Sequence record: NC_019521.1
Length of the DNA stretch: 64,000 nucleotides
Reading direction: 5' to 3' (one strand)
The translations under genes and the position numbers were made by a program. Below are positions 7,657 to 34,287 of the stretch, piece after piece. The first letter of the stretch is position 1. Every line of letters starts with the position of its first letter. Below the pieces are notes generated by a model. The model worked only from the letters and a program-made list of their open reading frames with translations, did no database searches and was not told where the DNA came from.

Positions 7657-8832
7657 ATGCGTAAACTATACATACTGAAATTCGATGAATCTTTGGATGA
7701 CGTCTCATGGTATTCTAAAGATTCAGATCATTTAACAGTTTCTGAAGTTAAGAACTTTGTAGAATTTGCTAAAGACGGATTCGAAATAAATCTAATTTCG
7801 TATATATCAGAAACTAGGAAACGTGACAATCTTACATTTCTAAACGTTTTCGATTTCATAGATACCGATATAAAGGAATCAGATGTTGTAATTTTCTGGA
7901 CTGGTTACAATTATTCGACTAGAGTTAAATGTGGTGTTTATGGAACTTTATGGTATACATGTTTCGCTTCACTACATAACAAACCAGTAACCCCTTACGT
8001 TTTATGTACTGATACTAGATGTTTCATGATGAATCCAGAATTCTTCATGGATAACAAAGTTTATAGTTCAGTTATCGGTAATACAATTGACAGTTTAGCT
8101 AAATCTGTTGATAAAGTAAAATTCAAATATCTAACACAGGCTAGAAATACTGAAGAATTTAAGAATCTTGTAAGAGCTAATCGAGACGCTAATCAAAATT
8201 TCTTAGAAACTATACATATTCCAACTCACTTACTTCCATTAGTTTCTCACAGAATGGAAAATATTACATATGAACATGACAATCAATATGTTTATTATGG
8301 TAGCGCTCCAATAGATTTTAGTAAGAAACGTGATTATCGTACTGAGAATATCTTTAATCTTTTCTATGCTAATAACTTTACAAATAAAGCTAAGGGTCGT
8401 TTAATCATAAATACTAAAGCTTGTGAAGTTCCAACTCAAATTACTAGTAATATCAAAGTATCTGATAGAATACCTTATTCAGAAATAAAGAATATGCTTA
8501 ATAAATCATTCGCTTCTGTTATTCTATCTGAAGAAGCTTATCAAAAGTGTGAGTTAATACCTAATCGTTTAATCGAAGGGTTAGCTGCTAAAACGTTATT
8601 ACTAATACATGAACAAGTATTGGGAGGTCTTATGAAAACTATTCATGATATTGGTTTTTCGTTATTACAGGTTATTGATATATCCAATGAAAGAGATTAC
8701 GAAACATCTAAACAGATCGATGAGCTAGCTTCAAATCATGAATTACGTAGAAGTATTATCATCAGTAATCAAAAACTTCTGAAAACTATTTTCAATCCAT
8801 TGAATCTTACAAATACAATAAATCGACTATAA
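7657..8832 (+). CDS. T4 beta-glucosyltransferase-like DNA glycosyltransferase (GT-B), paralog 1
   Basis: YVLCTDTRC vs BGT YYLFTDIRL. DRIPYSEIKNMLNKSFASVILSEEAY..IPNRLIEGLAAKTLLLI vs BGT GKIPMNMVSEKNSQAIAALIIGDKNY..TLRVWETMASDAVMLID (BGT sequence recalled). Confidence 0.7.
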   Translation: MRKLYILKFDESLDDVSWYSKDSDHLTVSEVKNFVEFAKDGFEINLISYISETRKRDNLTFLNVFDFIDTDIKESDVVIFWTGYNYSTRVKCGVYGTLWYTCFASLHNKPVTPYVLCTDTRCFMMNPEFFMDNKVYSSVIGNTIDSLAKSVDKVKFKYLTQARNTEEFKNLVRANRDANQNFLETIHIPTHLLPLVSHRMENITYEHDNQYVYYGSAPIDFSKKRDYRTENIFNLFYANNFTNKAKGRLIINTKACEVPTQITSNIKVSDRIPYSEIKNMLNKSFASVILSEEAYQKCELIPNRLIEGLAAKTLLLIHEQVLGGLMKTIHDIGFSLLQVIDISNERDYETSKQIDELASNHELRRSIIISNQKLLKTIFNPLNLTNTINRL

Positions 8833-8834
8833 AA

Positions 8835-9992
8835 ATGAATACAACAAAGAGACGACTATTTTTAATCAAATTCAAAGATTCGTTATCACCTGAATGTATC
8901 GATAAAGATACTATCAGATACAAAGAAATCTACAATGTTTTAAGATTCGTACCAACTAATGAATTCGAAATCAATCTAGTAAATTACGATAATCCGAAAG
9001 TTTCTGAAGAAAATAATCAACAGTATTACAAATACATTCATTATGAAGATTTCAAGAATCTGGAATTACTTGAAACGGATTTGTTAATTTTCTGGACTGG
9101 TTATATTTACGTTCCAACAGATGTCGATGTATCTAAAACTGATGCTTCTAATATTCGAGCATTTTATGAATGTTTAGAATCTACAAGAAATAAAGATAAC
9201 AAGCGATATCTGATTTGTACAGATACTAGATGTCCATTGATTAAGCCTGGTTTTTATTCAAGTAATGAAATATTCAAAGAAGAACTTAAGGATATCAATA
9301 TCGATGACATTCATTTGACATACCTAACACAAGCTATCGATCCTGAAGCATTTATCGAAATCGTTAAATCTTCAGAAATTAATAGTGTTCATAAAAATGT
9401 ATCAGCTATTCATATGAAGCTACATTTAGCTCCGTTAGTTTCACATGACATTCCAAAGATTAAGGAAAATCATAATGGTAAGTTTTTCTATTACGCTGGT
9501 GACTTACGTGATATCAGTAAACATAGATACGATAATATCATTAAGTTCTATTCAGTAGATTCTTCAGATTTATCAGTTAAACCATTGATAGCTTCAAACG
9601 TTCATCCAGATATTTACGATAAATTACCAAATGTTGAATTTATCAATAAGATACCATATTCTGAAGTTCCTGTAAGATTAAATGAAATGTTCGCTTCTGT
9701 TTGTTTCTCTGAAGCTGATTACGAAAAATGTAGACTTTTACCAAATCGTATTGCTGAAGGTATTGCTGCAAAAACACTTTTATTGATTCATCATAATATC
9801 GATCCAGAACGTAAGTTGAATTTAGAACCTTTACAGTATTTCGAAACTGTTGAAGACTTTAAGAAATCTTTGAAGTATTATTCAGAAAAACCTCATAGAC
9901 GTATTAACGCTATCAACAATCAACGTTATCAACTTTCGATAGAAGGTGATTTAGATGCTTTTCAGTTTTCAAGGGACTTTAGTACTATTTAA
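8835..9992 (+). CDS. T4 beta-glucosyltransferase-like DNA glycosyltransferase (GT-B), paralog 2
   Basis: YLICTDTRCP and NKIPYSEVPVRLNEMFASVCFSEADY..PNRIAEGIAAKTLLLIHHNID; clearly paralogous to 7657-8832. Confidence 0.7.
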   Translation: MNTTKRRLFLIKFKDSLSPECIDKDTIRYKEIYNVLRFVPTNEFEINLVNYDNPKVSEENNQQYYKYIHYEDFKNLELLETDLLIFWTGYIYVPTDVDVSKTDASNIRAFYECLESTRNKDNKRYLICTDTRCPLIKPGFYSSNEIFKEELKDINIDDIHLTYLTQAIDPEAFIEIVKSSEINSVHKNVSAIHMKLHLAPLVSHDIPKIKENHNGKFFYYAGDLRDISKHRYDNIIKFYSVDSSDLSVKPLIASNVHPDIYDKLPNVEFINKIPYSEVPVRLNEMFASVCFSEADYEKCRLLPNRIAEGIAAKTLLLIHHNIDPERKLNLEPLQYFETVEDFKKSLKYYSEKPHRRINAINNQRYQLSIEGDLDAFQFSRDFSTI

Positions 9993-9995
9993 TAT

Positions 9996-11228
9996 ATGAA
10001 TAAACCATTAATACTTAGAGAACTAATATTCCAACAATATTCTAGTTACGATAAGAACATCCAGATGTACAACATACATCTGGATGGTAACTTAAATGCT
10101 ACATTACATGCAATTTGTAACGATTTCAAAGTTATGACAAATGTAGCATTACATTTGAAACGTAATTTCCATCTAGAATATACAATCACTATTCCAAAGA
10201 ATACAAAACCTAATTCGTTAACATTGATTACTAATTTCGTAGAAGGTTTAGAAAAACTGATATCTAACGAAAACGTTTCATTATCCATCGTATTCAAAAA
10301 TATCAAATATAGAAACTCTGCTAAAGAAAATCGAGATAACGGTGAATGGATATTAGCAGATGGTATTAACGAAATCGATATTAACGAATTCGATTCTATA
10401 TCAACTAATTTCGAAAAATCTTTAGACTTAGTTAGTTCTTTCGAAGCTTTATACAATTGGAAATCTGAAGTATCTGAAGCTTTTAGAATCCTAGACATTA
10501 AGAAACGTAGATTCAGTTCTAGATTAAACGTTTCGTTACATTCTAAGGAAGATGAACGTGAATATCTTAAAGGTCTTGAGAAGAACTGTTCAACACTTTT
10601 CGCATTTTCAGATTCTGTGACATTACATAATCAAGCTCAATTAGATTACATAAAGAATTATTATGTTTCAGATACATATGATAAATTTAGACTTTTGAAT
10701 GGTAAAATAAACAAAGGTTTTAATGCTGAATTTATAGAATATCAAATGTCATTTTACAAATCTGTAAATACGATAAAGAAAAATCAATTGATTCAGTTCT
10801 TCGAAAACTATGATATAGAATACATATTTCCTTTTAGACTAACTGACCCGGATTGGGGATTTCAAAATCTTACTGATGAAGAGAAATCAAAAACTGTAGT
10901 AACTGATCCAACGAATTCGATACTATTAGTAACTGATGAAATACAAAAAGCTTTCATCGAATGTGTCAGAGGTTTGGATAAACGTACATTATTATTTACG
11001 TTATTCGATCTTATCAGAACTAAGAAAATAGATGTAAAGATTCCACTGTTTTCTAATCCTTTGAATATTTTACATCAGACAAGTATCGAAATACTTTATT
11101 TGATATACGATAATATCGATTTCAGATTCGATAAACATGATACTTTCGAAACTGACATTTACGATATGTTCTATGTAACTGGGAATACAACAAATTGGTT
11201 AAACAAAATAACAAAAACAAATGACTAA
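9996..11228 (+). CDS. Putative DNA arabinosyltransferase (Aat / RB69-type)
   Basis: Ordered motifs DGNLN, TIPKN, LHNQAQLDYI, IFPFRLTD, VTDPTNS and LHQTSIE match my recollection of the RB69-type Aat motifs DGNFQ, IPKN, LNPRQREYI, FWPFRISD, ITDPNDS and LHPGTIE. Needs a profile search. Confidence 0.55.
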   Translation: MNKPLILRELIFQQYSSYDKNIQMYNIHLDGNLNATLHAICNDFKVMTNVALHLKRNFHLEYTITIPKNTKPNSLTLITNFVEGLEKLISNENVSLSIVFKNIKYRNSAKENRDNGEWILADGINEIDINEFDSISTNFEKSLDLVSSFEALYNWKSEVSEAFRILDIKKRRFSSRLNVSLHSKEDEREYLKGLEKNCSTLFAFSDSVTLHNQAQLDYIKNYYVSDTYDKFRLLNGKINKGFNAEFIEYQMSFYKSVNTIKKNQLIQFFENYDIEYIFPFRLTDPDWGFQNLTDEEKSKTVVTDPTNSILLVTDEIQKAFIECVRGLDKRTLLFTLFDLIRTKKIDVKIPLFSNPLNILHQTSIEILYLIYDNIDFRFDKHDTFETDIYDMFYVTGNTTNWLNKITKTND

Positions 11229-11928
11229 AATACAAGATAAACAAGAATTCGATAGTTTAGATGAAGCTTATCTAACTTTACTAAAAAGTTTGATCGATTT
11301 AGAACCTAACGAATTAGGTGAACGTGAAATGTTTGGTATCGCTTTCGATATCAAAAATATTGATGAAACTGATCCTAAAACTAATTTCAGTAAAATCAAA
11401 GAACGTAATATCAATTTAGTATTTCAAAATGCTTTCGCTCGTTGGTTAATGTCAGGTTCTAATTCAGCTGATGAGCTTTTACCACTGAATAAACGAACTT
11501 CTCAGTTTAATGAAATCGAAGGTAGAAATCTTCTATATCCACCACGTATTCAGAATCAAATTTATGACATAGTTGATGAATTAACCGAAAATCCTATGTC
11601 AAGACGTGCTACATTATTGATACTTGACGAAAGGGATCAGATAGTTAGAAAAGAAAAACGTGAGAAATCTGATTGTAAGAAAGAATATCCTTGTACAATA
11701 GCATTACATTTCTTTATTCGTAATAACAGATTACATTCAAATGTTATGATGCGTTCTAATAATGCTGTTAAAACTATATGTTTCGATTTTTCTAATTTCG
11801 CTTTCGTACAAAATTGTATAGCTAGAGAATTAGATTTGAAAGCTGGAACTATGCATTATTACATATCAAATGCTCACATTTTACCTGAAGATTATGAACA
11901 TGCTTTAAAAATCTGTGAAGCTAACTAA
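11221..11928 (+). CDS. Thymidylate-synthase-family dCMP-modifying enzyme (dCMP hydroxylase/hydroxymethylase-like)
   Basis: SRRA, catalytic YPC158, MRSNN(178-181), Asp189 at the TS Asn177 specificity position, SNAHI. Short TS fold. Confidence 0.8.
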   Translation: MTKIQDKQEFDSLDEAYLTLLKSLIDLEPNELGEREMFGIAFDIKNIDETDPKTNFSKIKERNINLVFQNAFARWLMSGSNSADELLPLNKRTSQFNEIEGRNLLYPPRIQNQIYDIVDELTENPMSRRATLLILDERDQIVRKEKREKSDCKKEYPCTIALHFFIRNNRLHSNVMMRSNNAVKTICFDFSNFAFVQNCIARELDLKAGTMHYYISNAHILPEDYEHALKICEAN

Positions 11929-13822: not shown

Positions 13823-14845
13823 ATGTCAAATATTAAACGTTCAGTTCTTGTAACTGGTGCTCTTGGATTCATTGGTTCTAATTTCGTTAGAACTATGGCA
13901 AAAAGATATCCAGATTACTTATTCATTCCACTTGATAATTTCGGATATGCTGCAAACCTGGAACATATCCCAGTCTTTGAAAAACTTACAAACGTTACAA
14001 AAGTTCAAGAAATAACTTTAGGTAGTTTCGATGAAGCTGAAAACTTTATTCTAGCTTCAATTTTCAAAACTTATGACATTGATACTGTGGTACATTTTGC
14101 TGCTGAATCACATGTCGATAATTCGATTTCTAATCCTGACATATTCGTTTTAGCTAATGTCAAAGGTACTGTCGATTTATTGAATGTTGCTAAGAATTAT
14201 TGGGCTGATCGTAAAGATGTAATATTCCATCATGTTTCAACCGATGAAGTATTTGGGGCTCTTGGAATGGAAGGTTCATTTAACGATGATTCTAATTACG
14301 ACCCACATTCACCTTATTCAGCTTCAAAAGCTGCAAGTGATATGTTCGTTAAAGCTTATGCTACGACTTACAATATGTTAGTATCGATTTCTAATTGTTC
14401 AAATAACTTCGGACCATATCAACACAAGGAAAAACTGATTCCAAAAGTTTTAGACGCAATTAAGAACAAAACTGAAATACCTCTTTACGGACATGGTCAA
14501 AATGTTAGAGATTGGTTACATGTTTTAGATCATAACGACGCTATAGATATGATTATCCATCATACTTTGAAATCTAAAGAATCTCGTAGAACTTGGTTAA
14601 TCGGTGGAGGTGTTGAATTAACAAATATAGAATTAATCGATAGACTAACAGAATCTGCTAATGAACATGATAATACATTTGATTATAAGTCATTGATTAA
14701 ATTCGTATCAGATCGTGCTGGTCATGATTTACGATATTCAATAGATTCTAGCACCTTACGTAAAGAACTTGAATGGAAGCCAAAATACGACATTACTAAA
14801 TGTATACCTTACATGATCGGAGAAACTTTAGGATTTACGAAATAA
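13823..14845 (+). CDS. rmlB: dTDP-glucose 4,6-dehydratase
   Basis: GALGFIG Rossmann motif, HFAAESHVDNSI, HVSTDEVFG, YSASK, DRAGHDLRY. Confidence 0.92.
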   Translation: MSNIKRSVLVTGALGFIGSNFVRTMAKRYPDYLFIPLDNFGYAANLEHIPVFEKLTNVTKVQEITLGSFDEAENFILASIFKTYDIDTVVHFAAESHVDNSISNPDIFVLANVKGTVDLLNVAKNYWADRKDVIFHHVSTDEVFGALGMEGSFNDDSNYDPHSPYSASKAASDMFVKAYATTYNMLVSISNCSNNFGPYQHKEKLIPKVLDAIKNKTEIPLYGHGQNVRDWLHVLDHNDAIDMIIHHTLKSKESRRTWLIGGGVELTNIELIDRLTESANEHDNTFDYKSLIKFVSDRAGHDLRYSIDSSTLRKELEWKPKYDITKCIPYMIGETLGFTK

Positions 14846-15417
14846 TGAAAAACATACCAGCAGGAATTGAAGGATGTATTTTTATACAGAATTCACAATT
14901 TAAAGATGAACGTGGATCGTTCAGAGAAACTTTCAGTAAAGAACGATTATCGTTCATATGTAAACATGAATTTGTTCAGGACAATGTTTCGATATCACAT
15001 AAGAATGTATTACGTGGAATGCATATTCAAACAGGTGATTCTGTACAAGGTAAACTTGTTACATGTCTTAAAGGTAGATTAATCGATTTAGTTGTAGACA
15101 TTCGTAAAGATTCTCTTACTTACGGTAAGACTATTACAGTATTACTACATGAACCAAATATGTCGTTATTTGTACCACGTGGTTGTCTACATGGATTCAT
15201 ATCATTAGAAGACGATACAATCATGCATTACAAATGTGATAACTATTATTCGAAAGAACATGAAGTATCTTATGACCCTTTAAGTTTACCGGAAAATATA
15301 TTCATACAAATCGAACAGGGTTTTAATATCGGTATAGACGATTTGATTATCAATTCTAAAGACAGAACTGGTAAAATGATCTATACTAACGAAGGAATTT
15401 TAAGTTCATTCATTTAA
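14845..15417 (+). CDS. rmlC: dTDP-4-dehydrorhamnose 3,5-epimerase
   Basis: DERGSFRE, VQDNVS, VLRGMHIQ, QGKLV, HGF. TAATG coupling to rmlB gives start 14845. Confidence 0.9.
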   Translation: MKNIPAGIEGCIFIQNSQFKDERGSFRETFSKERLSFICKHEFVQDNVSISHKNVLRGMHIQTGDSVQGKLVTCLKGRLIDLVVDIRKDSLTYGKTITVLLHEPNMSLFVPRGCLHGFISLEDDTIMHYKCDNYYSKEHEVSYDPLSLPENIFIQIEQGFNIGIDDLIINSKDRTGKMIYTNEGILSSFI

Positions 15418-15420
15418 CAT

Positions 15421-16302
15421 ATGCTTACAAGAAATAGAAAAGGAATTATTTTAGCAGGTGGGTCTGGGACCCGCTTGCATCCATTGACTATCAGTGTTTC
15501 GAAACAGTTATTACCTGTATACGATAAACCAATGATTTACTATCCATTGACAACTCTTATCGAAGCTGGTATAAACGAAATACTTATAATATCAACACCA
15601 CAGGATAGAAATTCTTTCGAGAACTTACTAGGTAACGGTTCACAATTTGGTGTTAGAATAGAATACGCTGTTCAAGAAAAACCTAATGGTTTAGCACAAG
15701 CTTTCGTTATCGGTGAAGAATTCATAGGTAAATCTAAAGTAGCTCTGATTTTAGGTGACAACATTTTCCATGCTTCTAATATAGATAGATTACTTATGGA
15801 AGCTAATATGTCTGATAAAAATACGATATTTGCATATCGTGTAAATGATCCTCAGAGATATGGTGTAGTTGAATTCGATGAATATGATAACGCTGTTTCG
15901 ATCGAAGAAAAACCTTTGAATCCTAAATCTAATTACGCAGTACCAGGCTTATATTTCTATAATAACGATGTTATCGAAGTAGCTAAGACTATCAAACCTT
16001 CAGCTCGTGGAGAATACGAAATATCAGATATTAACGCATATTACTTAGATAAGAATCAATTATCAGTTAAAGCTTTTGACAGAAGTGGTACTACATGGTT
16101 AGATACTGGTACTATTCAGTCTTTAGCTGAAGCTTCTTTATTTGTTGAAGTCATGCAAAATCGTACCGGTAATTTAATAGGTAGCCCCGAAGAAGCTGCA
16201 TTTAGACATGATGAAATATCTAAAGACTCATTAATTGAATCTGCTAAGAAATATGATAAGTCTGGTTATGGTGAGTATCTTTTGAAACTTGTACAGAAAT
16301 GA
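15421..16302 (+). CDS. rmlA: Glucose-1-phosphate thymidylyltransferase
   Basis: GIILAGGSGTRLHP, SKQLLPVYDKPM, LGDNIF, EEKP, WLDTGT. Confidence 0.95.
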   Translation: MLTRNRKGIILAGGSGTRLHPLTISVSKQLLPVYDKPMIYYPLTTLIEAGINEILIISTPQDRNSFENLLGNGSQFGVRIEYAVQEKPNGLAQAFVIGEEFIGKSKVALILGDNIFHASNIDRLLMEANMSDKNTIFAYRVNDPQRYGVVEFDEYDNAVSIEEKPLNPKSNYAVPGLYFYNNDVIEVAKTIKPSARGEYEISDINAYYLDKNQLSVKAFDRSGTTWLDTGTIQSLAEASLFVEVMQNRTGNLIGSPEEAAFRHDEISKDSLIESAKKYDKSGYGEYLLKLVQK

Positions 16303-29151: not shown

Positions 29152-29970
29152 ATGACCCAACGATTAGATAAATTTCTCTATAACGGAGAAGTATATGACA
29201 AAAAGAATCATTTCGTATTCACAACGATAGTTGATAGAAATGGATTCGCTTTGACAAAATATCCATTCATTCAAGAATACTTTACAAGAATTCATGACTT
29301 TATCAAAAATGACACTCAAATCATTTGCGATAGATACGCATTCGATGATTCGAAACTTCATGAAATTCTAACATCAAATTTCTTCAGAGTAGTACATTCT
29401 AAGAAAATACTAGAACATTGGAAAGACCCTGAAATGGAACGTGCTAGAGTTCCGAAAACTAATCATATGTTCTTCAAAAGTTTAGCAGGTGCTTTACATT
29501 CGACTGAAGAATATTTCGATGGAATCATTTGGTTCTTTGGTAATTTCAAAATGTTTGAAACTATAGCACCAATGATAAACCGAGTTTTTATCGTAAGACT
29601 TAACTGTGATTTTGGTGAATTATGTCCAGAACTTCTAGACATTGACGGTGTTTATGACGAACATCTTTTCAGTAGTTTCAATCTTACTCATAAGAAAATC
29701 ATGGAATCTGAACAATCCATCGAATGGGTTAAAACTATGAATAAACCTGTCGAAACTCGTGTAGAGGTTGTAAGTGAACATATGAAACTTGTAACTAAAG
29801 CTGCTGATGTTCGTGAAGAACGTAAAGACATTCCAATGTTTCATGATTATCAATTCGAAGAATATGCATTAACTTCTAAATTTAAATTGTCTCGTAAGAG
29901 ACAGAAAGAAGTTGAAGCTCGTAAAGAAGCAAAATTACATGAATCCGAAGAACTTCAAGAAATCGACTAA
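29152..29970 (+). CDS. Degenerate dihydrofolate-reductase-fold protein (tentative)
   Basis: TTIVDRNG, QIICDRYAFD and IIWFFGNFKMFETIAPMINRVFIVRLNCDF..CPE echo DHFR IAAVDENG, PVIMGRKTWE and [29 protein letters not shown]..FPE. Confidence 0.4.
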   Translation: MTQRLDKFLYNGEVYDKKNHFVFTTIVDRNGFALTKYPFIQEYFTRIHDFIKNDTQIICDRYAFDDSKLHEILTSNFFRVVHSKKILEHWKDPEMERARVPKTNHMFFKSLAGALHSTEEYFDGIIWFFGNFKMFETIAPMINRVFIVRLNCDFGELCPELLDIDGVYDEHLFSSFNLTHKKIMESEQSIEWVKTMNKPVETRVEVVSEHMKLVTKAADVREERKDIPMFHDYQFEEYALTSKFKLSRKRQKEVEARKEAKLHESEELQEID

Positions 29971-30024
29971 TAGTAAAGAACTATTAGTCTTCATAAATGG
30001 TAAAATCCAAATAATCAAAAACAA

Positions 30025-30744
30025 ATGAACAAACAAACTAATCTCCTGTTTGACGACAGACAAGACTTAGCTAAATCATTGGAACATAGACTGACCAATG
30101 TGAACAACCAACTTAACCAATTTGTAGCTGAATTCCGTAAACTTGTACAAGACCCGCAAAGTAATGTATTACACATGTTCGATATGATTATCAACAAAAA
30201 TGATAGAATCGATATCGATCATACAATCTATTTATGTGGTATCGGTAAGAACATTCCATCACTTCGTAAAGCTTCAGCAACTTTTAAATCGTTAGGTCTT
30301 AAATGTGAAGTACTTGACGCAGTTGATGCTTTACATGGTGATTTAGGTTGTATCAGGGATTATGATACTGTAATATTCTTTTCGAAATCTGGTAATACTT
30401 CAGAATTGTTAAGAACTATGCAATATTTAGATTCCATAAACACTGTAATTGATGGTGAAAGTTCTGTATCGAATAAATCTATTTGTATAGATATGTTTGC
30501 AGTTTCAATGAATAGCGAATTCGATTCAGGTTTTGAAAACTTCAAAACCATCAATCATGTAGTATTACCGAAAACCGGTGAAGCTGACGAATTCAATAAA
30601 GTCCCAACCACTTCACCGATAGCCTTCCAAATCTTCTTAGACATGTTAGCTTGTGAATATGCTTCTGTTTATGATTTGACTTTAGAAGATTTCGGTGGTA
30701 ATCACCCGGGTGGTGACATTGGAAAATTCATAAACAAAAACTAA
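30025..30744 (+). CDS. KdsD/GutQ-like SIS-domain arabinose-5-phosphate isomerase (no CBS domains)
   Basis: CGIGKN..RKASATFKSLG, ALHGDLG, FSKSGNTSEL, VPTTS, NHPGG at the C-terminus. Confidence 0.8.
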   Translation: MNKQTNLLFDDRQDLAKSLEHRLTNVNNQLNQFVAEFRKLVQDPQSNVLHMFDMIINKNDRIDIDHTIYLCGIGKNIPSLRKASATFKSLGLKCEVLDAVDALHGDLGCIRDYDTVIFFSKSGNTSELLRTMQYLDSINTVIDGESSVSNKSICIDMFAVSMNSEFDSGFENFKTINHVVLPKTGEADEFNKVPTTSPIAFQIFLDMLACEYASVYDLTLEDFGGNHPGGDIGKFINKN

Positions 30745-30749
30745 ATACC

Positions 30750-30947
30750 ATGTCAACATTTTTAGAACGACTGATAACAGAACAAAAGGAATTGTCTGAA
30801 AAGATTTCTAAGCTTCATGATTATATTTCGAATAATTCACATTTCGAAACATTAACTGAAAGAAATCAAGAATTACTTGAAGATCAATACGAAACTATGA
30901 GTAATTACAATTCAATTCTTTTAGAACGAATCAAAATCAATCGTTAA
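30750..30947 (+). CDS. Small coiled-coil protein (crAss001_48-like family, tentative)
   Basis: FLERLITEQKELSEKISKL..LLEDQYETMSNYNSILLERI pattern. Confidence 0.5.
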   Translation: MSTFLERLITEQKELSEKISKLHDYISNNSHFETLTERNQELLEDQYETMSNYNSILLERIKINR

Positions 30948-30950
30948 ATC

Positions 30951-30979
30951 AAAAGTCGTATCGAATAGATACGACTTTT
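30951..30979 (+). terminator. Terminator, 12-bp stem
   Basis: aaaagtcgtatc-gaata-gatacgactttt. Confidence 0.75.
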
Positions 30980-30993
30980 TCATTCTTTCAATT

Positions 30994-31416
30994 ATGAACA
31001 AATACGATTTCAATTGGGTAAGGGATGAATCCTTAGACACTTATGATGGTTATTATCATGCTTATATCGTTACTAGAAAGTTTGGAAACGTTAAAGCTAG
31101 ACTAGGAATAAATCTAGACCCTTACATGAATTGTTATGTTTCTTTAAGTAGTGGTAGGAAACGTAAGCAATTAAGTATTTACGAAGACAAACCTGAAAAG
31201 AATTCATGTGGAATCGAAATATTGATATGGACTAAGGAGGCTATGCTAGATTTCCCTATTTGGTTTAATGACCGTCATATCAATAAACTTAATTCTATGC
31301 TAGTTACAGGTTCTGATACTAGACGTTTCAAAATATACAAGCGTTATTTGATACCTCATGGATTCTATACACAAAAACAGCATGACGGTGGAATCTATCT
31401 GTTCAAGAAACTTTAG
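30994..31416 (+). CDS. Hypothetical protein
   Basis: TTCAATT-ATG start. Confidence 0.65.
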   Translation: MNKYDFNWVRDESLDTYDGYYHAYIVTRKFGNVKARLGINLDPYMNCYVSLSSGRKRKQLSIYEDKPEKNSCGIEILIWTKEAMLDFPIWFNDRHINKLNSMLVTGSDTRRFKIYKRYLIPHGFYTQKQHDGGIYLFKKL

Positions 31417-31434
31417 TCAGTTTCTTAGTAATAT
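31406..31434 (+). promoter_or_regulatory. Phage promoter AGAAAC-N17-TAATAT
   Basis: Consensus-like, upstream of the nucleotidyltransferase-kinase gene. Confidence 0.55.
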
Positions 31435-31466
31435 TCAATTATAAAAACTTAACAAAAACAAATTTA

Positions 31467-33197
31467 ATGGAGCATGTAGTTATATTGGCTGGTGGTCTTG
31501 GTTCTAGACTTCATAAATTTACAGCTAATCTTTATCCTAAGATTTTGATTTCGATGGGTAACGAAACTATGTTAGACAAACTTGTAAATTACTATTCAGT
31601 TTACAAGGATTTGAAATCGTTTAACATTGTCGTTTCGACTGAAGAAAATCAAAGACTTATATCTAATTATCTGAATCGATATCATTCTAACGCTTTCGGA
31701 AAAAATACAAAAATCGATGTATTACTTTACAAAAAGTTAGATGGTTCTTTCAATACGATTTACAACCTATTCAAGGGTCAGGGATTGAAGAATGTAGTAT
31801 TCAATTGGTCTGATATCATTCCAACATCACATCTTCAGGTAACAAAATTATTGACTAACGAATTCAAGATAATTACTGATGTTCAAAAACGTCATAGGAT
31901 GGGTATCGAATTTAGACAAGGTACAAGAACTTATGAAGTTGTCAAATATTCGAAAGATGATATGAAGGGTAACATTCCAGGATATTTCTTTATAGGTGAT
32001 TTCGATAGTATATTCGATCATGTATTCGTTGATAACTTAAGACTATATCATAATCTGTCACCAGAAATAGATTTGATGGATGCTTTAGAAGCACAAATCG
32101 AAAAGAATAGATGTATAGTTTCAACTAATGAAATAGATTTTATCGATATCGGAGATGTTGAAAAATATGAAAAATACATGGAAACGATATCGTTAGAAAC
32201 TAGATATTTCAATAGTTTAGAAATTACTGAAAATACAGTTCGTAAGAAAGCTTTAAACGAAAAAGGTATGTCAGTAATCGATAATGAATTGAATTGGTAT
32301 TCTACAGTTGGTAGATTCTTTCCAGATACTAAAAATCGTCCAGCTATTCCAAGAATTTCTAATATTCAAAAGAATTATGATTATCCTCAAGGTGAACAGA
32401 AATTTCATTCTATTGAATTTTCAATGAATCGTATTGACGGTAAAACTGTTGACGAATATCTTTGGAACGATCCTTTAGAAATGTATAATGTATTACGTTT
32501 ATTTGATACTGAGATTTCTAAGTTTCATAATATCGAACAATCGAATAAACCTGAAAAACGTTGGAATGAACATCATATGCATGAATATTTCAAAGTTACA
32601 TATCAACGTTTAGATGAAATATTCTTCATGTTACAAGCTGATGTACATCATTTCAAAATCGGTGATAAGATTCATAGTTTCAAAGGTGATACTATTCATT
32701 TACTTGAACATACTATGAAATATCTTTATGACGCTTATTCTAAATCTGAAGCTAATGAATGGGGATTGATTCATGGTGACCCAAACACTTCTAACGTAAT
32801 GATTTCTAATGATGGTACCGAAATGTTCTTTATCGACCCAAGAGGATTATTCGGACATTCTTTGATGTTTGGTGATATTTATTACGATTGGGCTAAATTC
32901 ATATATGGACTTCAAGGTTATTCTAGATTCAATTTAGATAAGACTTTCGAATTACATTATGACGAACATAGTAAAACTATGCAAGTAGATTTCTTCAAAT
33001 ATGGAATCTATGATATCGATACAGTGTTACATACTGTAAAACAGATTAGACCTGATTTAGATATCAAGCGTTTACGTGTTATCGTTGGTTTGATTCATGT
33101 TAAATTAGCACAGTACATAAGAAACAATCCATCAAAAATGTACGCAACTTATTATTACGGTAAATACTTATTAGAAACAACCTTATCTGAAAAATAA
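31467..33197 (+). CDS. Sugar-1-phosphate nucleotidyltransferase fused to APH/choline-kinase-like sugar kinase
   Basis: N-terminal VILAGGLGSRL..PKIL, NWSD and DIGD. C-terminal LIHGDPNTSN and FFIDPRG kinase motifs. Confidence 0.8.
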   Translation: MEHVVILAGGLGSRLHKFTANLYPKILISMGNETMLDKLVNYYSVYKDLKSFNIVVSTEENQRLISNYLNRYHSNAFGKNTKIDVLLYKKLDGSFNTIYNLFKGQGLKNVVFNWSDIIPTSHLQVTKLLTNEFKIITDVQKRHRMGIEFRQGTRTYEVVKYSKDDMKGNIPGYFFIGDFDSIFDHVFVDNLRLYHNLSPEIDLMDALEAQIEKNRCIVSTNEIDFIDIGDVEKYEKYMETISLETRYFNSLEITENTVRKKALNEKGMSVIDNELNWYSTVGRFFPDTKNRPAIPRISNIQKNYDYPQGEQKFHSIEFSMNRIDGKTVDEYLWNDPLEMYNVLRLFDTEISKFHNIEQSNKPEKRWNEHHMHEYFKVTYQRLDEIFFMLQADVHHFKIGDKIHSFKGDTIHLLEHTMKYLYDAYSKSEANEWGLIHGDPNTSNVMISNDGTEMFFIDPRGLFGHSLMFGDIYYDWAKFIYGLQGYSRFNLDKTFELHYDEHSKTMQVDFFKYGIYDIDTVLHTVKQIRPDLDIKRLRVIVGLIHVKLAQYIRNNPSKMYATYYYGKYLLETTLSEK

Positions 33198-34186
33198 TGA
33201 AATTTAAAGGAACTGACCAAAAAACTTCAAGACTGATATTCACCGACTTCGATGGTATCTTCAGTCATGATATGCAATACTCATATATTGACAGAACTAG
33301 TAACGGTCCTGAGAAAAATGCAAAAACTGTAGCATTCGGTATTCGTGATGTTGTTAAGATTCTGAATTACGCTGGTTTCGAAATTCATATTGTTTCGGGT
33401 GATTCTACAGAAAAAGGTCAAGCTTTAACTAAGAAGTTTTTACATAACATTCATGTGGAATCTGTAAACTTTGTACCAACCGATCAAAAACTTGATAGAA
33501 TTCTTGAACTAGCTAATGGTAGGGATTTCATCTGGATCGGTGAGGACTTGATTGACTTACAAATCAAGGAATTCGCCATGAATTACATAACTACCGATAA
33601 CGCTCCAAACATGTTGAAGGAATTAGCTGATGCTAACTTTAGACAAGATTATTTTTGGCACGATTTGTTATCATATTTAATGAAAACTAAAATCTTCAAT
33701 GTTGTTGACGAAGATACACATTGTCTGATAAAATACGCTTTACAGAAATACATCAAACCAGATTTCTTCAAGTTAGTAAGTTACGGATTGATTGATAAAA
33801 ACTATCTAATCGAATCCTTAGAAACATATCGAGGTGTTGAAGAACTTAACGAAATCAAAGTTAACGATATTGAAGACTTCATGGATAAGATAAAAACTAC
33901 AGAAGTTCTAAAAACTGTACCAGTCTTTGGTAAACTCGATTTGATTTCATCTATGAAAGTTTTAGTCAATAACATTTGTAAACATGAACTTAAGTTTGTA
34001 TATACTAAGAACGTTCATTTGTTTTCAGACACTGTAAATATCGGTGACATATTCGAAGTTCTTTCATCATTAAGATTTACAGAATCTTCTAACAGTTTCC
34101 ACGATTACTATATCTACGGATTTACAAAAATCGTAGAAGGTAAGATTGAAAACATGTTAAACGAGAAGTTAGGAGCTAAATTCTAG
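33197..34186 (+). CDS. KdsC-like HAD phosphatase with C-terminal extension
   Basis: FTDFDG motif I, IVSGD motif II, WIGEDLIDL motif IV (KdsC YIGDDLIDW). Confidence 0.75.
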   Translation: MKFKGTDQKTSRLIFTDFDGIFSHDMQYSYIDRTSNGPEKNAKTVAFGIRDVVKILNYAGFEIHIVSGDSTEKGQALTKKFLHNIHVESVNFVPTDQKLDRILELANGRDFIWIGEDLIDLQIKEFAMNYITTDNAPNMLKELADANFRQDYFWHDLLSYLMKTKIFNVVDEDTHCLIKYALQKYIKPDFFKLVSYGLIDKNYLIESLETYRGVEELNEIKVNDIEDFMDKIKTTEVLKTVPVFGKLDLISSMKVLVNNICKHELKFVYTKNVHLFSDTVNIGDIFEVLSSLRFTESSNSFHDYYIYGFTKIVEGKIENMLNEKLGAKF

Positions 34187-34219: not shown

Positions 34220-34287
34220 TCTACTAATAATTAATTAGGGAGACATTTGATCTTGTCTCCCTTCATGGTTTCACTAAAATAAAAATA

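Follow-up and report, generated by a model that had tools for sequence, protein, structure and literature searches.

A predicted UDP-D-arabinofuranose donor pathway with a variant phosphatase in Sphingomonas phage PAU

Three genes of Sphingomonas phage PAU, gp212, gp215 and gp216, probably encode this phage's version of the UDP-D-arabinofuranose pathway of the Afh/RB69 type, a reading that we draw from sequence comparisons. They lie in a window of 64,000 nucleotides (JQ362498.1, bases 124001-188000), to which all positions below refer; the genes given with coordinates are on the plus strand. The open reading frames at 30025-34186 sit exactly where the original prediction had placed them and are identical to annotated PAU gp212-gp216. 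Its observations, of an arabinose-donor module built from Kdo-pathway folds, were confirmed overall, whereas its interpretation was borne out in part: the kind of pathway stands, but not the order of the steps, the phosphatase match or the promoters. Work of 2025-26 on RB69-like phages established a phage arabinose-donor pathway (He et al. 2026; Mahler et al. 2025; Lee et al. 2026, PMC13326640). The interpretation, although right in kind, is therefore not new, the route being already published for RB69, DLP3 and HY126.

The isomerase gene, gp212 (30025-30744; 239 aa), is predicted by homology to encode a single-SIS, CBS-less D-arabinose-5-phosphate isomerase. Pfam finds one SIS domain and no CBS domain, as had been proposed, the NCBIfam matches are to KpsF/KdsD/GutQ models only, and GmhA models from NCBIfam give no match at E 0.01 or better. 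The protein also matches phrog_5670 ('arabinose 5-phosphate isomerase', E 4e-79) and the isomerase of Escherichia phage HY126 (30% identity, E 7e-16), while its best PDB matches (5uqi, 3fxa, 3etn and 2xhz) are all of the A5P-isomerase type. The catalytic residues of KdsD, from the bacterial Kdo pathway (K59, H88, E111, E152 and H193, numbered as in E. coli KdsD), do not vary across alignment A8 and gp212 has all five, so that it retains the single-SIS KpsF/KdsD-type architecture and intact catalytic set expected of an Afh isomerase. KdsD itself carries a tandem CBS pair after the SIS domain, whereas gp212 stops about six residues past HPGG, E. coli KdsD running some 130 residues further. The GKN that replaces the GKS of E. 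coli, singled out by the original prediction, is real, but it occurs in every aligned phage homologue (HY126, MA9V-2, L019, L021 and S-SRM01) and is a trait of the clade rather than an oddity of PAU.

The second enzyme, gp215 (31467-33197; 576 aa), is a predicted AfhE-like bifunctional protein, in which residues 1 to about 235 form a sugar-1-phosphate nucleotidyltransferase and residues from about 240 to 576 an APH-like kinase, putatively an arabinose-5-phosphate 1-kinase. Pfam and NCBIfam agree with the nucleotidyltransferase-kinase fusion proposed earlier, placing an NTP_transferase domain at the N-terminus and an APH/choline-kinase-like domain at the C-terminus, the latter matching APH/EcKL/Bud32-type kinases only. 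HY126 AfhE, described in PMC13326640 as a characterised arabinose-5-phosphate 1-kinase/UDP-arabinose pyrophosphorylase, is homologous over the full length (27% identity, E 2e-37), and the PHROG match is phrog_4098 (E 2e-158). Across the seven phage homologues/lineages of alignment A3, the nucleotidyltransferase residues G10, R14, K25 and D116 (GxGxR...K) and the kinase residues K260, E274, H436-G437-D438, N443 and D457 are invariant; gp215 is thus an AfhE-type fusion with both active sites intact, lacking the C-terminal tail of about 55 residues found in the AfhE-type enzymes of Straboviridae.

The phosphatase is where PAU differs. The N-terminal domain of gp216 (33197-33670, of a gene spanning 33197-34186; 329 aa) is proposed, from its fold and motifs, to be a KdsC/YrbI-fold HAD enzyme acting as an arabinose-1,5-bisphosphate 5-phosphatase. 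Its top 50 Foldseek matches in the PDB are all KdsC/YrbI or KDN-9-P phosphatases, with E values of about 1e-7 and TM scores, normalised to target length, of 0.62-0.74, in keeping with the KdsC-like phosphatase of the original prediction, and the fold model has pLDDT >90 across residues 10-165. The HAD motifs fall within residues 1 to about 150, with D17, D19, K98, D117 and D120 conserved and E116 at the first motif-IV Asp position, where relatives have Asp. The domain thus shares with KdsC/KDN-9-P (YrbI) enzymes the HAD C0 fold with its beta-hairpin flap and motifs I-IV, but it does not reach the curated family score: its best NCBIfam hit, NF058599, scores 21.6 bits where the cut-off is 180, and KdsC models give no match with E of 0.01 or below. 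Neither gp212 nor gp216 attains the curated equivalog cut-offs of bacterial KdsD and KdsC. Since PF00793 and PF02348 are unmatched across the whole 219-kb PAU genome in a search in which the control genomes matched, KdsA and KdsB are missing, as had been noted, and gp216 therefore has no Kdo context.

Beyond the HAD domain, and extra relative to KdsC, gp216 carries the extension of about 180 residues reported earlier (residues 150-329; 33644-34183), which is predicted to be helical, with pLDDT of 66-77 for residues 161-210 and <50 across most of 211-329. Outside PAU it was detected in P0005 and P0006, the two nearest homologues, and in no others, and it has no profile similarity to the gp181-type glycosyltransferase domain; we would guess that it serves as a docking or capping module specific to this lineage. 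Against HY126 AfhF, gp216 shows no similarity (E 0.24), no AfhF-like sequence occurs in the PAU genome, and TIGR01689 is matched by AfhF and Thanatos TH1_061 but not by gp216. In PAU, then, the position taken in HY126 by a 128-aa EcbF/BcbF-type AfhF is filled by a KdsC-fold HAD with a 180-aa extension, whose N-terminal domain we propose to be an analogue, not an orthologue, of AfhF. This lack of homology weighs against the proposed role, as does E116 at the motif-IV position.

Gene linkage ties the three genes together. The order isomerase, AfhE-like enzyme, phosphatase is the same in PAU and HY126, and the start codon of gp216 overlaps the stop of gp215 just as that of AfhF overlaps the stop of AfhE. 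According to PMC13326640, the HY126 isomerase, AfhE and AfhF correspond to gp55, gp52:53 and gp51 of RB69 and to gp83, gp82 and gp81 of Acinetobacter phage DLP3. In two further phage contigs gp216 homologues lie directly 3' of gp215 homologues, and a gp216-type HAD gene adjoins AfhE-like genes in PAU, L004, L006, L019 and L021. A phosphatase always follows the AfhE-like gene in HY126, Thanatos, S-SRM01, PTm1 and PAU, yet its family differs: HY126 and Thanatos have a TIGR01689 HAD, S-SRM01 a small HAD-IIIA protein, PTm1 a histidine phosphatase and PAU a KdsC-fold HAD. The match to the RB69-type route thus holds for the three genes as the PAU counterpart of a path from ribulose-5-phosphate to NDP-D-arabinose, and breaks down at the phosphatase. 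PAU has no homologue of the gene (386 aa) lying next after AfhF in HY126.

The likely user of the donor is gp181 (9996-11228), identified by profile match as a homologue of the Straboviridae 'arabinosyltransferase 1'. A profile of gp181 together with the fused glycosyltransferases aligns with the HY126 glycosyltransferase encoded beside its ThyA homologue (hhalign probability 98.9%, E 2e-17, 265 columns), and gp181 matches the C-terminal part of the HAD-glycosyltransferase fusion P0007 (27% identity, E 1e-20). Next to it lies gp182 (11221-11928), a ThyA homologue (28% identity to the HY126 enzyme, E 4e-22) with the signature of a 5-hydroxy-dCMP synthase in residue alignment: E. coli ThyA D169 is replaced by Asn and N177 by Asp, as in the homologues of HY126, PTm1, Thanatos, L019 and L021, the diagnostic residue being taken from PMC13326640. 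PAU thus has, as HY126 does, a D169N ThyA homologue together with an arabinosyltransferase 1 homologue. PAU DNA has been shown experimentally to contain a modified cytosine and migrates 26% slower than lambda DNA (PMC5646251). The modified base of the published route is given as 5-hydroxycytosine (PMC13326640), and judging by gp182, 5-hydroxycytosine, not hmC, is the most likely acceptor in PAU.

As the original prediction had it, the module stands about 19 kb from this Aat-like gene (the end of gp181 is 18.8 kb upstream of gp212). That distance, and the two genes that interrupt the module, count against the proposed pathway, and the two-locus arrangement distinguishes PAU from the Afh phages, as do a host lineage and a phage family unrelated to Straboviridae. 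The same genes are joined in relatives. L019 and L021 have compact operons in which a D169N ThyA homologue is followed by a HAD-glycosyltransferase fusion, a SIS gene and an AfhE-like gene, and eight metagenomic cluster representatives (at 50% identity), the L019 and L021 fusions among them, combine a gp216-type HAD and a gp181-type glycosyltransferase in one polypeptide. Together, the operons and the fusion indicate that gp212, gp215 and gp216 belong with the distant gp181 and gp182.

Substrates, choice of nucleotide, order of steps and product on DNA can be proposed by extension from these relatives. Host ribulose-5-phosphate would be converted by gp212 to arabinose-5-phosphate, which the C-terminal kinase of gp215 would phosphorylate at C1 to give arabinofuranose-1,5-bisphosphate; the HAD domain of gp216 would strip the 5-phosphate, and the N-terminal nucleotidyltransferase of gp215 would turn arabinose-1-phosphate into NDP-arabinose, probably UDP-arabinose. 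The enzyme gp181, and possibly further glycosyltransferases of PAU, may then use the donor to add arabinose to 5-hydroxycytosine, a base that gp182 would supply at the mononucleotide level. The original prediction had instead put free arabinose between arabinose-5-phosphate and arabinose-1-phosphate, an order without support from the HY126 route as reported, which runs from arabinose-5-phosphate to the 1,5-bisphosphate (AfhE kinase), then to arabinose-1-phosphate (AfhF) and UDP-Araf (He et al. 2026, via PMC13326640).

The interleaving of the module with two unrelated genes was also seen. One, gp213 (30750-30947; 65 aa), is crAss001_48-related (PF21825, E 7e-20; phrog_774), and the other, gp214 (30994-31416; 140 aa), is an orphan with no Pfam, NCBIfam, PHROG or PDB match, occurring among 50,697 phage records in PAU itself only; for neither is there evidence of a part in the pathway. 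A small ORF likewise separates the isomerase and AfhE genes of HY126. Claims of dedicated promoters were not upheld, sigma-70-like sites numbering 34 against 38.7 expected from shuffles. A scan for terminator-like hairpins found four, against 1.7 expected; hairpins lie after gp211 just upstream of gp212 (29965-29989), after gp213 (30951-30979) and after gp216 (34237-34262), and one read directly from the sequence covers the gp214 stop (31405-31426). The exact 11-mer CAAAAACAAAT runs into the gp212 start codon (30016-30026, plus strand) and recurs at the gp182 start (11212-11222) and 4 nt before the gp215 start (31453-31463). These three copies in the window compare with 0.40 expected, three being reached in 1 of 100 shuffles; the whole genome has four, the fourth inside gp155, and conservation of the motif does not extend to relatives.

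Most alternatives turn on gp216. Its HAD family differs from that of AfhF, so gp216 need not share the AfhF substrate, and the enzyme might act after transfer, with gp215 making UDP-arabinose-5-phosphate from arabinose-1,5-bisphosphate, gp181 placing 5-phospho-arabinose on DNA and the HAD dephosphorylating the DNA-bound sugar. The direct fusion of HAD to glycosyltransferase in the eight cluster representatives would suit such a scheme, as would the sucrose-phosphate and trehalose-6-phosphate synthase/phosphatases (SPS/SPP and TPS/TPP), in which a GT-B glycosyltransferase and a HAD share one polypeptide and act in that order. The phage fusions differ in having the HAD N-terminal, hence the reverse order, and an acceptor that is presumably DNA, and in PAU the genes are separate. 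Moreover, fusion proves a shared pathway only, not consecutive steps, PAU and its two closest relatives couple the HAD gene to the AfhE-like gene rather than to the glycosyltransferase, and the HY126 phosphatase reportedly takes the free bisphosphate as its substrate, ahead of activation with the nucleotide (PMC13326640). We regard action after transfer as unlikely. Slightly more doubtful still is a nucleotide phosphatase role for gp216, acting for example on canonical or intermediate dNMPs to aid cytosine replacement, with the arabinose route using a host phosphatase or none. It is prompted by MA9V-2, L016 and L020, where the HAD gene has no adjacent AfhE-like gene and stands, counter to our reading, among nucleotide-metabolism genes (ThyA homologues, ribonucleotide reductase, dUTPase/dCTP-deaminase-like and thymidylate kinase genes). 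The ThyA homologues themselves belong to glycosylation clusters, though, the fold and nearest cellular relatives of gp216 are sugar-acid phosphate phosphatases (KdsC, KDN-9-P) and not nucleotidases, and the HAD is elsewhere fused to a glycosyltransferase or, in the five genomes and loci named above, beside AfhE-like genes.

The module might alternatively activate another sugar, be it heptose, Kdo or a different pentose, or supply the donor for something other than DNA, for instance glycans of the virion or the host. The ADP-/GDP-heptose pathway (GmhA, HldE or HddA/HddC, GmhB) follows the identical chemical logic: a SIS isomerase and an anomeric kinase act first, a HAD enzyme takes the distal phosphate off a bisphosphate, and nucleotidyl transfer comes last; HldE fuses kinase and nucleotidyltransferase as gp215 does. 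In cyanophage S-SRM01 the triad lies among sugar epimerases and fucosyl-/glycosyltransferases with no ThyA homologue in the 8.3 kb covered, and PAU also encodes RmlA, RmlB and RmlC. The parts themselves speak otherwise: the module does not combine a GmhA-type isomerase with a PfkB- or GHMP-type kinase. Its isomerase is of the KpsF type, with the catalytic residues of A5P isomerases, the HPGG histidine among them, retained, its kinase is APH-like where that of the heptose pathway is PfkB, and its nucleotidyltransferase is RmlA/GlmU-like rather than cytidylyltransferase-like. With KdsA and KdsB absent, and operons of relatives linking the module to a 5-hydroxy-dCMP synthase and a DNA arabinosyltransferase homologue, we consider another sugar or target the least probable of these readings.

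The arabinose-donor pathway acting before transfer is thus the reading that we favour for PAU, where, with identities to characterised enzymes of just 27-30%, sugar or nucleotide specificity could differ. We class it as a system of known kind in which the phosphatase is the variant part. New here are the PAU phosphatase, which is not of the AfhF type, the unrelated histidine phosphatase that PTm1 carries at the same gene position, and the fusion, in eight metagenomic protein clusters, of a gp216-type HAD to a first arabinosyltransferase of the gp181 type.

The 576-residue open reading frame in the window matches gp215 of Sphingomonas phage PAU (JQ362498.1, 219,372 bp) at 100% in a tblastn search, and the window spans positions 124001-188000 of this record. 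The open reading frames named in the original prediction coincide exactly with the annotated genes gp212 to gp216. Among these, gp212 alone is given a function in the record's annotation ('carbohydrate isomerase'). A related pathway has been described in other phages. RB69 and DLP3 DNA contains mono- and poly-arabinosylated 5-hydroxycytosine, for which a ThyA homologue supplies the base in mononucleotide form, and three phage enzymes convert ribulose-5-phosphate to NDP-arabinofuranose (Lee et al. 2026, PMC13326640). For Escherichia phage HY126, the summary of He et al. [quoted passage not shown] PAU itself had been recorded as the most distant phage homologue of RB69 ORF53_52c, at 24% identity, in a study that also reported Butyrivibrio proteins in which a SIS domain is added to the two-domain ORF53_52c-type enzyme (Thomas et al. 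2018, PMC6024577).

PAU is a distant member of this pathway, published in 2025-26, and carries a non-orthologous phosphatase; it does not constitute a new kind of system. The new information lies in fusions of the HAD phosphatase to a glycosyltransferase (GT) and in the variable phosphatase position. The original observation was confirmed overall, with amendments. The outline of its route from ribulose-5-phosphate to NDP-arabinose holds, except for the step through free arabinose, since the characterised HY126 route, as summarised, passes via the bisphosphate. Likewise, its match to an RB69-type donor route named the right kind of pathway, while the phosphatase match, the order of steps and the acceptor base need correcting.

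The first enzyme, gp212 (30025-30744, + strand), has a single SIS domain and lacks the CBS pair (Pfam). In NCBIfam it matched KpsF/GutQ/KdsD models only, under their curated cut-offs, with no match to any GmhA model, and it matched phrog_5670, 'arabinose 5-phosphate isomerase', at E 4e-79. Its sequence matches in the PDB were restricted to A5P-isomerase-type SIS proteins (5uqi, 3fxa, 3etn and 2xhz, the last being the SIS domain of E. coli KdsD). In an alignment of gp212, five phage homologues and KdsD of E. coli, residues K59, H88, E111, E152 and H193 (KdsD numbering), which we take to be the catalytic set of KdsD, were invariant, as were the phosphate-binding Ser/Thr positions. The GKN found in place of the expected GKS is real, but is no peculiarity of gp212: it is present in 6/6 phage proteins, the HY126 isomerase included; it marks the phage clade and gives no hint of function loss. 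KdsA and KdsB, noted as missing from the module, are encoded nowhere in the PAU genome, and this absence, together with the family assignments, led us to reject readings of the module as a heptose or Kdo pathway.

The second enzyme, gp215 (31467-33197, + strand), combines an N-terminal nucleotidyltransferase domain with an APH/choline-kinase-like domain in its C-terminal half (Pfam, NCBIfam), and matches phrog_4098 over the whole protein (E 2e-158). Homologues occur in 356 phage records, chiefly from T4-like phages of Escherichia, Acinetobacter, Klebsiella, Serratia and others, and the alignment with AfhE of HY126 runs end to end (27% identity, E 2e-37). Across an alignment of seven lineages (PAU, one PAU relative, MA9V-2, PTm1, HY126, Thanatos and S-SRM01), the nucleotidyltransferase residues G10, R14, K25 and D116 and the kinase residues K260, E274, H436-G437-D438, N443 and D457 are invariant, so that both active sites of gp215 appear, from sequence, to be intact.

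The phosphatase gene, gp216 (33197-34186, + strand), has a start codon that overlaps the gp215 stop, the same arrangement as AfhE/AfhF in HY126. Similarity between gp216 and AfhF was undetectable (E 0.24), and searches elsewhere in PAU found neither an AfhF-like sequence nor a homologue of the 386-residue HY126 gene. TIGR01689, the EcbF/BcbF capsule phosphatase model, is matched by AfhF and by the corresponding Thanatos protein; the only NCBIfam match of gp216 was a weak one to a KDN-9-P phosphatase model. A three-sequence alignment yielded a gp216 fold model with a mean pLDDT of 41, and a 46-sequence alignment raised the N-terminal 165 residues above 90, resolving the HAD domain alone. All of the top 50 Foldseek matches of this model in the PDB were KdsC/YrbI or KDN-9-P phosphatases, and the weaker members of a gp216 profile search were short KdsC-like proteins. 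The description 'KdsC-like' is hence correct for PAU gp216, as a trait of the PAU lineage and not of the RB69 route. The HAD motif residues D17, D19, K98, D117 and D120 are conserved; at position 116 gp216 has Glu where its relatives have the first motif-IV Asp.

Homologues of gp216 are rare. A word search of 5.8 billion proteins returned two, both encoded immediately after a gp215 homologue (41-44% identity) on separate metagenomic contigs, one of which has a gp217-like muramidase gene next. Among 1.84 billion representatives, profile searching returned 73 proteins, 33 of them at E 1e-10 or better, and in eight representatives an N-terminal gp216-type HAD is fused to a domain homologous to gp181, the arabinosyltransferase 1 homologue of PAU (P0007, P0009, P0010 and five more, P0011, P0018, P0023, P0054 and P0065; loci L019:6001-7650, L021:6001-7656 and L015:17-1678). 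By profile comparison the fused GT domain corresponds to the HY126 GT adjoining the ThyA homologue (98.9% probability, E 2e-17), itself the counterpart of RB69 'arabinosyltransferase 1'. In both L019 and L021 the genes run in the order ThyA homologue (D169N), HAD-GT fusion, SIS isomerase and AfhE-like enzyme, the last 33% identical to gp215 (E 3e-81), which means that functions split over two PAU loci 18.8 kb apart form one operon in relatives. Neighbourhood, fusions and operons thus provide several independent lines of evidence that gp216 belongs to the arabinose pathway. No mention of the HAD-GT fusion was found in the accessible literature; it ties synthesis of the donor directly to glycosylation of DNA at the genomic level, and could help to annotate such clusters in metagenomes. 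We also observed a divergent FMN reductase/flavodoxin-like gene adjoining the D169N ThyA homologue of L021 (L021:4781-5251); this fits the flavin dependence of the RB69 5-hydroxy-dCMP synthase, a property examined previously (PMC13326640).

The gene following the AfhE-like gene differs between phages. HY126 and Thanatos have a TIGR01689 HAD there, cyanophage S-SRM01 has a small HAD-IIIA protein, and PAU has a KdsC-fold HAD. In Tenacibaculum jumbo phage PTm1 the gene, ORF-166 (L007:7559-8263), encodes a histidine phosphatase (PF00300, E 9e-23) and is flanked by the AfhE-like gene and a ThyA homologue with D169N; a search for a SIS isomerase in PTm1 found none. Chryseobacterium phage MA9V-2 (L002:12816-14159 and L011:4719-7694) has its isomerase and AfhE-like genes together, and a KdsC-like HAD within a 456-residue protein 72 kb away. 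One gene position is shared by at least three kinds of phosphatase (AfhF-type HADs, the histidine phosphatase and the KdsC-fold HAD), and the comparison shows that it is this step of the pathway that can be replaced. We infer that such a pattern, a recurrent phosphatase of varying family, would be expected if the pathway removes one phosphate from a bisphosphate, and the variability at this position thereby lends indirect support to the bisphosphate route.

A different order of events would place the phosphatase after glycosyl transfer. Here UDP-arabinose-5-phosphate would serve as donor, the GT would place 5-phospho-arabinose onto 5-hydroxycytosine of DNA, and the HAD would afterwards strip the phosphate from the DNA-bound sugar, so that the KdsC-fold HAD of the PAU lineage would partner the DNA arabinosyltransferase instead of acting on free sugar. 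The HAD would act fused to the GT in the eight metagenomic clusters and as a separate protein in PAU, perhaps docked via its 180-residue extension. If true, this would amount to a synthase-phosphatase mechanism on DNA, with a transient phosphorylated glyco-DNA intermediate; we regard it as improbable. The extension (residues 150-329) is detectable in the two closest homologues only (261 and 303 residues long). Fold prediction, proposed for this region, resolved the HAD domain but not the extension, for which a helical structure is predicted, at pLDDT 66-77 as far as residue 210 and at less than 50 for most of residues 211-329. A protein-atlas search with residues 150-329 yielded nothing usable (feature scores at most 0.78, TM at most 0.37). 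A match to Vp25_capsid (Pfam E 3e-4, below the cut-off; PDB 7chk, E 0.019) was taken as chance, and the idea that the extension is a degenerate remnant of the fused GT was rejected (hhalign probability 0.2%). A docking or capping role is our guess.

Hairpins follow gp211, gp213, gp214 and gp216. The claim that the module has its own promoters was not borne out, sigma-70-like sites being no commoner than in shuffled sequence under a model that may not suit PAU. The exact 11-mer CAAAAACAAAT occurs in four copies in the 219-kb genome. Three of them, against an expectation of 0.40 for the window, adjoin the starts of genes of this one pathway, at the start codon itself or 4 nt upstream of it: gp182 (11212-11222), gp212 (30016-30026) and gp215 (31453-31463). 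Either a common operator or translation-initiation element, or coincidence in A-rich leaders, could account for this; relatives do not conserve the 11-mer, and we therefore rejected it as a conserved regulatory element and treat it as a PAU-only observation.

The ThyA homologue gp182 (11221-11928, + strand), which follows gp181 (9996-11228, + strand), has Asn in place of D169 and Asp in place of N177 when aligned with E. coli ThyA. The same D169N/N177D pattern is found in the ThyA homologues of HY126, PTm1, Thanatos, L019 and L021, and D169N has been proposed as diagnostic of 5-hydroxy-dCMP synthases, with validation on nine diverse enzymes (Lee et al., PMC13326640). The homologues of MA9V-2 and L016 retain Asp169. 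In MA9V-2 this 447-residue protein combines the hydroxymethylase-like Asp169 with Asp177, so that its pentose might go onto hydroxymethylcytosine and not 5-hydroxycytosine.

Further candidate glycosyltransferases are present in the window (gp171 and the paralogues gp179 and gp180), as are RmlA/B/C genes, and the final PAU adduct may for this reason exceed arabinose alone in complexity. The tandem paralogues gp179 and gp180 (7657-9992) lie just upstream of gp181/gp182, each matching phrog_32512 (E below 1e-200) but no Pfam family, and are candidates for additional sugar transferases. Near the ThyA homologue and GT genes, gp185-gp187 (13823-16302) are annotated as RmlB, RmlC and RmlA, with no RmlD annotated within the 60.5 kb of the record examined (111500-172000); this second nucleotide-sugar route may supply a deoxyhexose for the DNA adduct. 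Separately, the recorded host is Sphingomonas paucimobilis, set against a PAU G+C content of ~31% and closest sequenced relatives for the pathway genes on Bacteroidota (Chryseobacterium, Tenacibaculum); given this, the host assignment may be worth re-examining.

Among jumbo phages, it was in PAU that heavy DNA modification was first noticed. In constant-field gels PAU DNA lags behind that of lambda, running 26% slower, and it contains a partially modified cytosine (PMC5646251); both properties fit a neutral, bulky glycosylation. Taken together, gp212, gp215 and gp216 with gp181 and gp182 give a concrete, testable chemical proposal for PAU DNA, arabinosylated 5-hydroxycytosine, and carry the RB69/HY126 pathway beyond the T4-like phages of Proteobacteria into an unrelated lineage of jumbo phages with Bacteroidota-infecting relatives.
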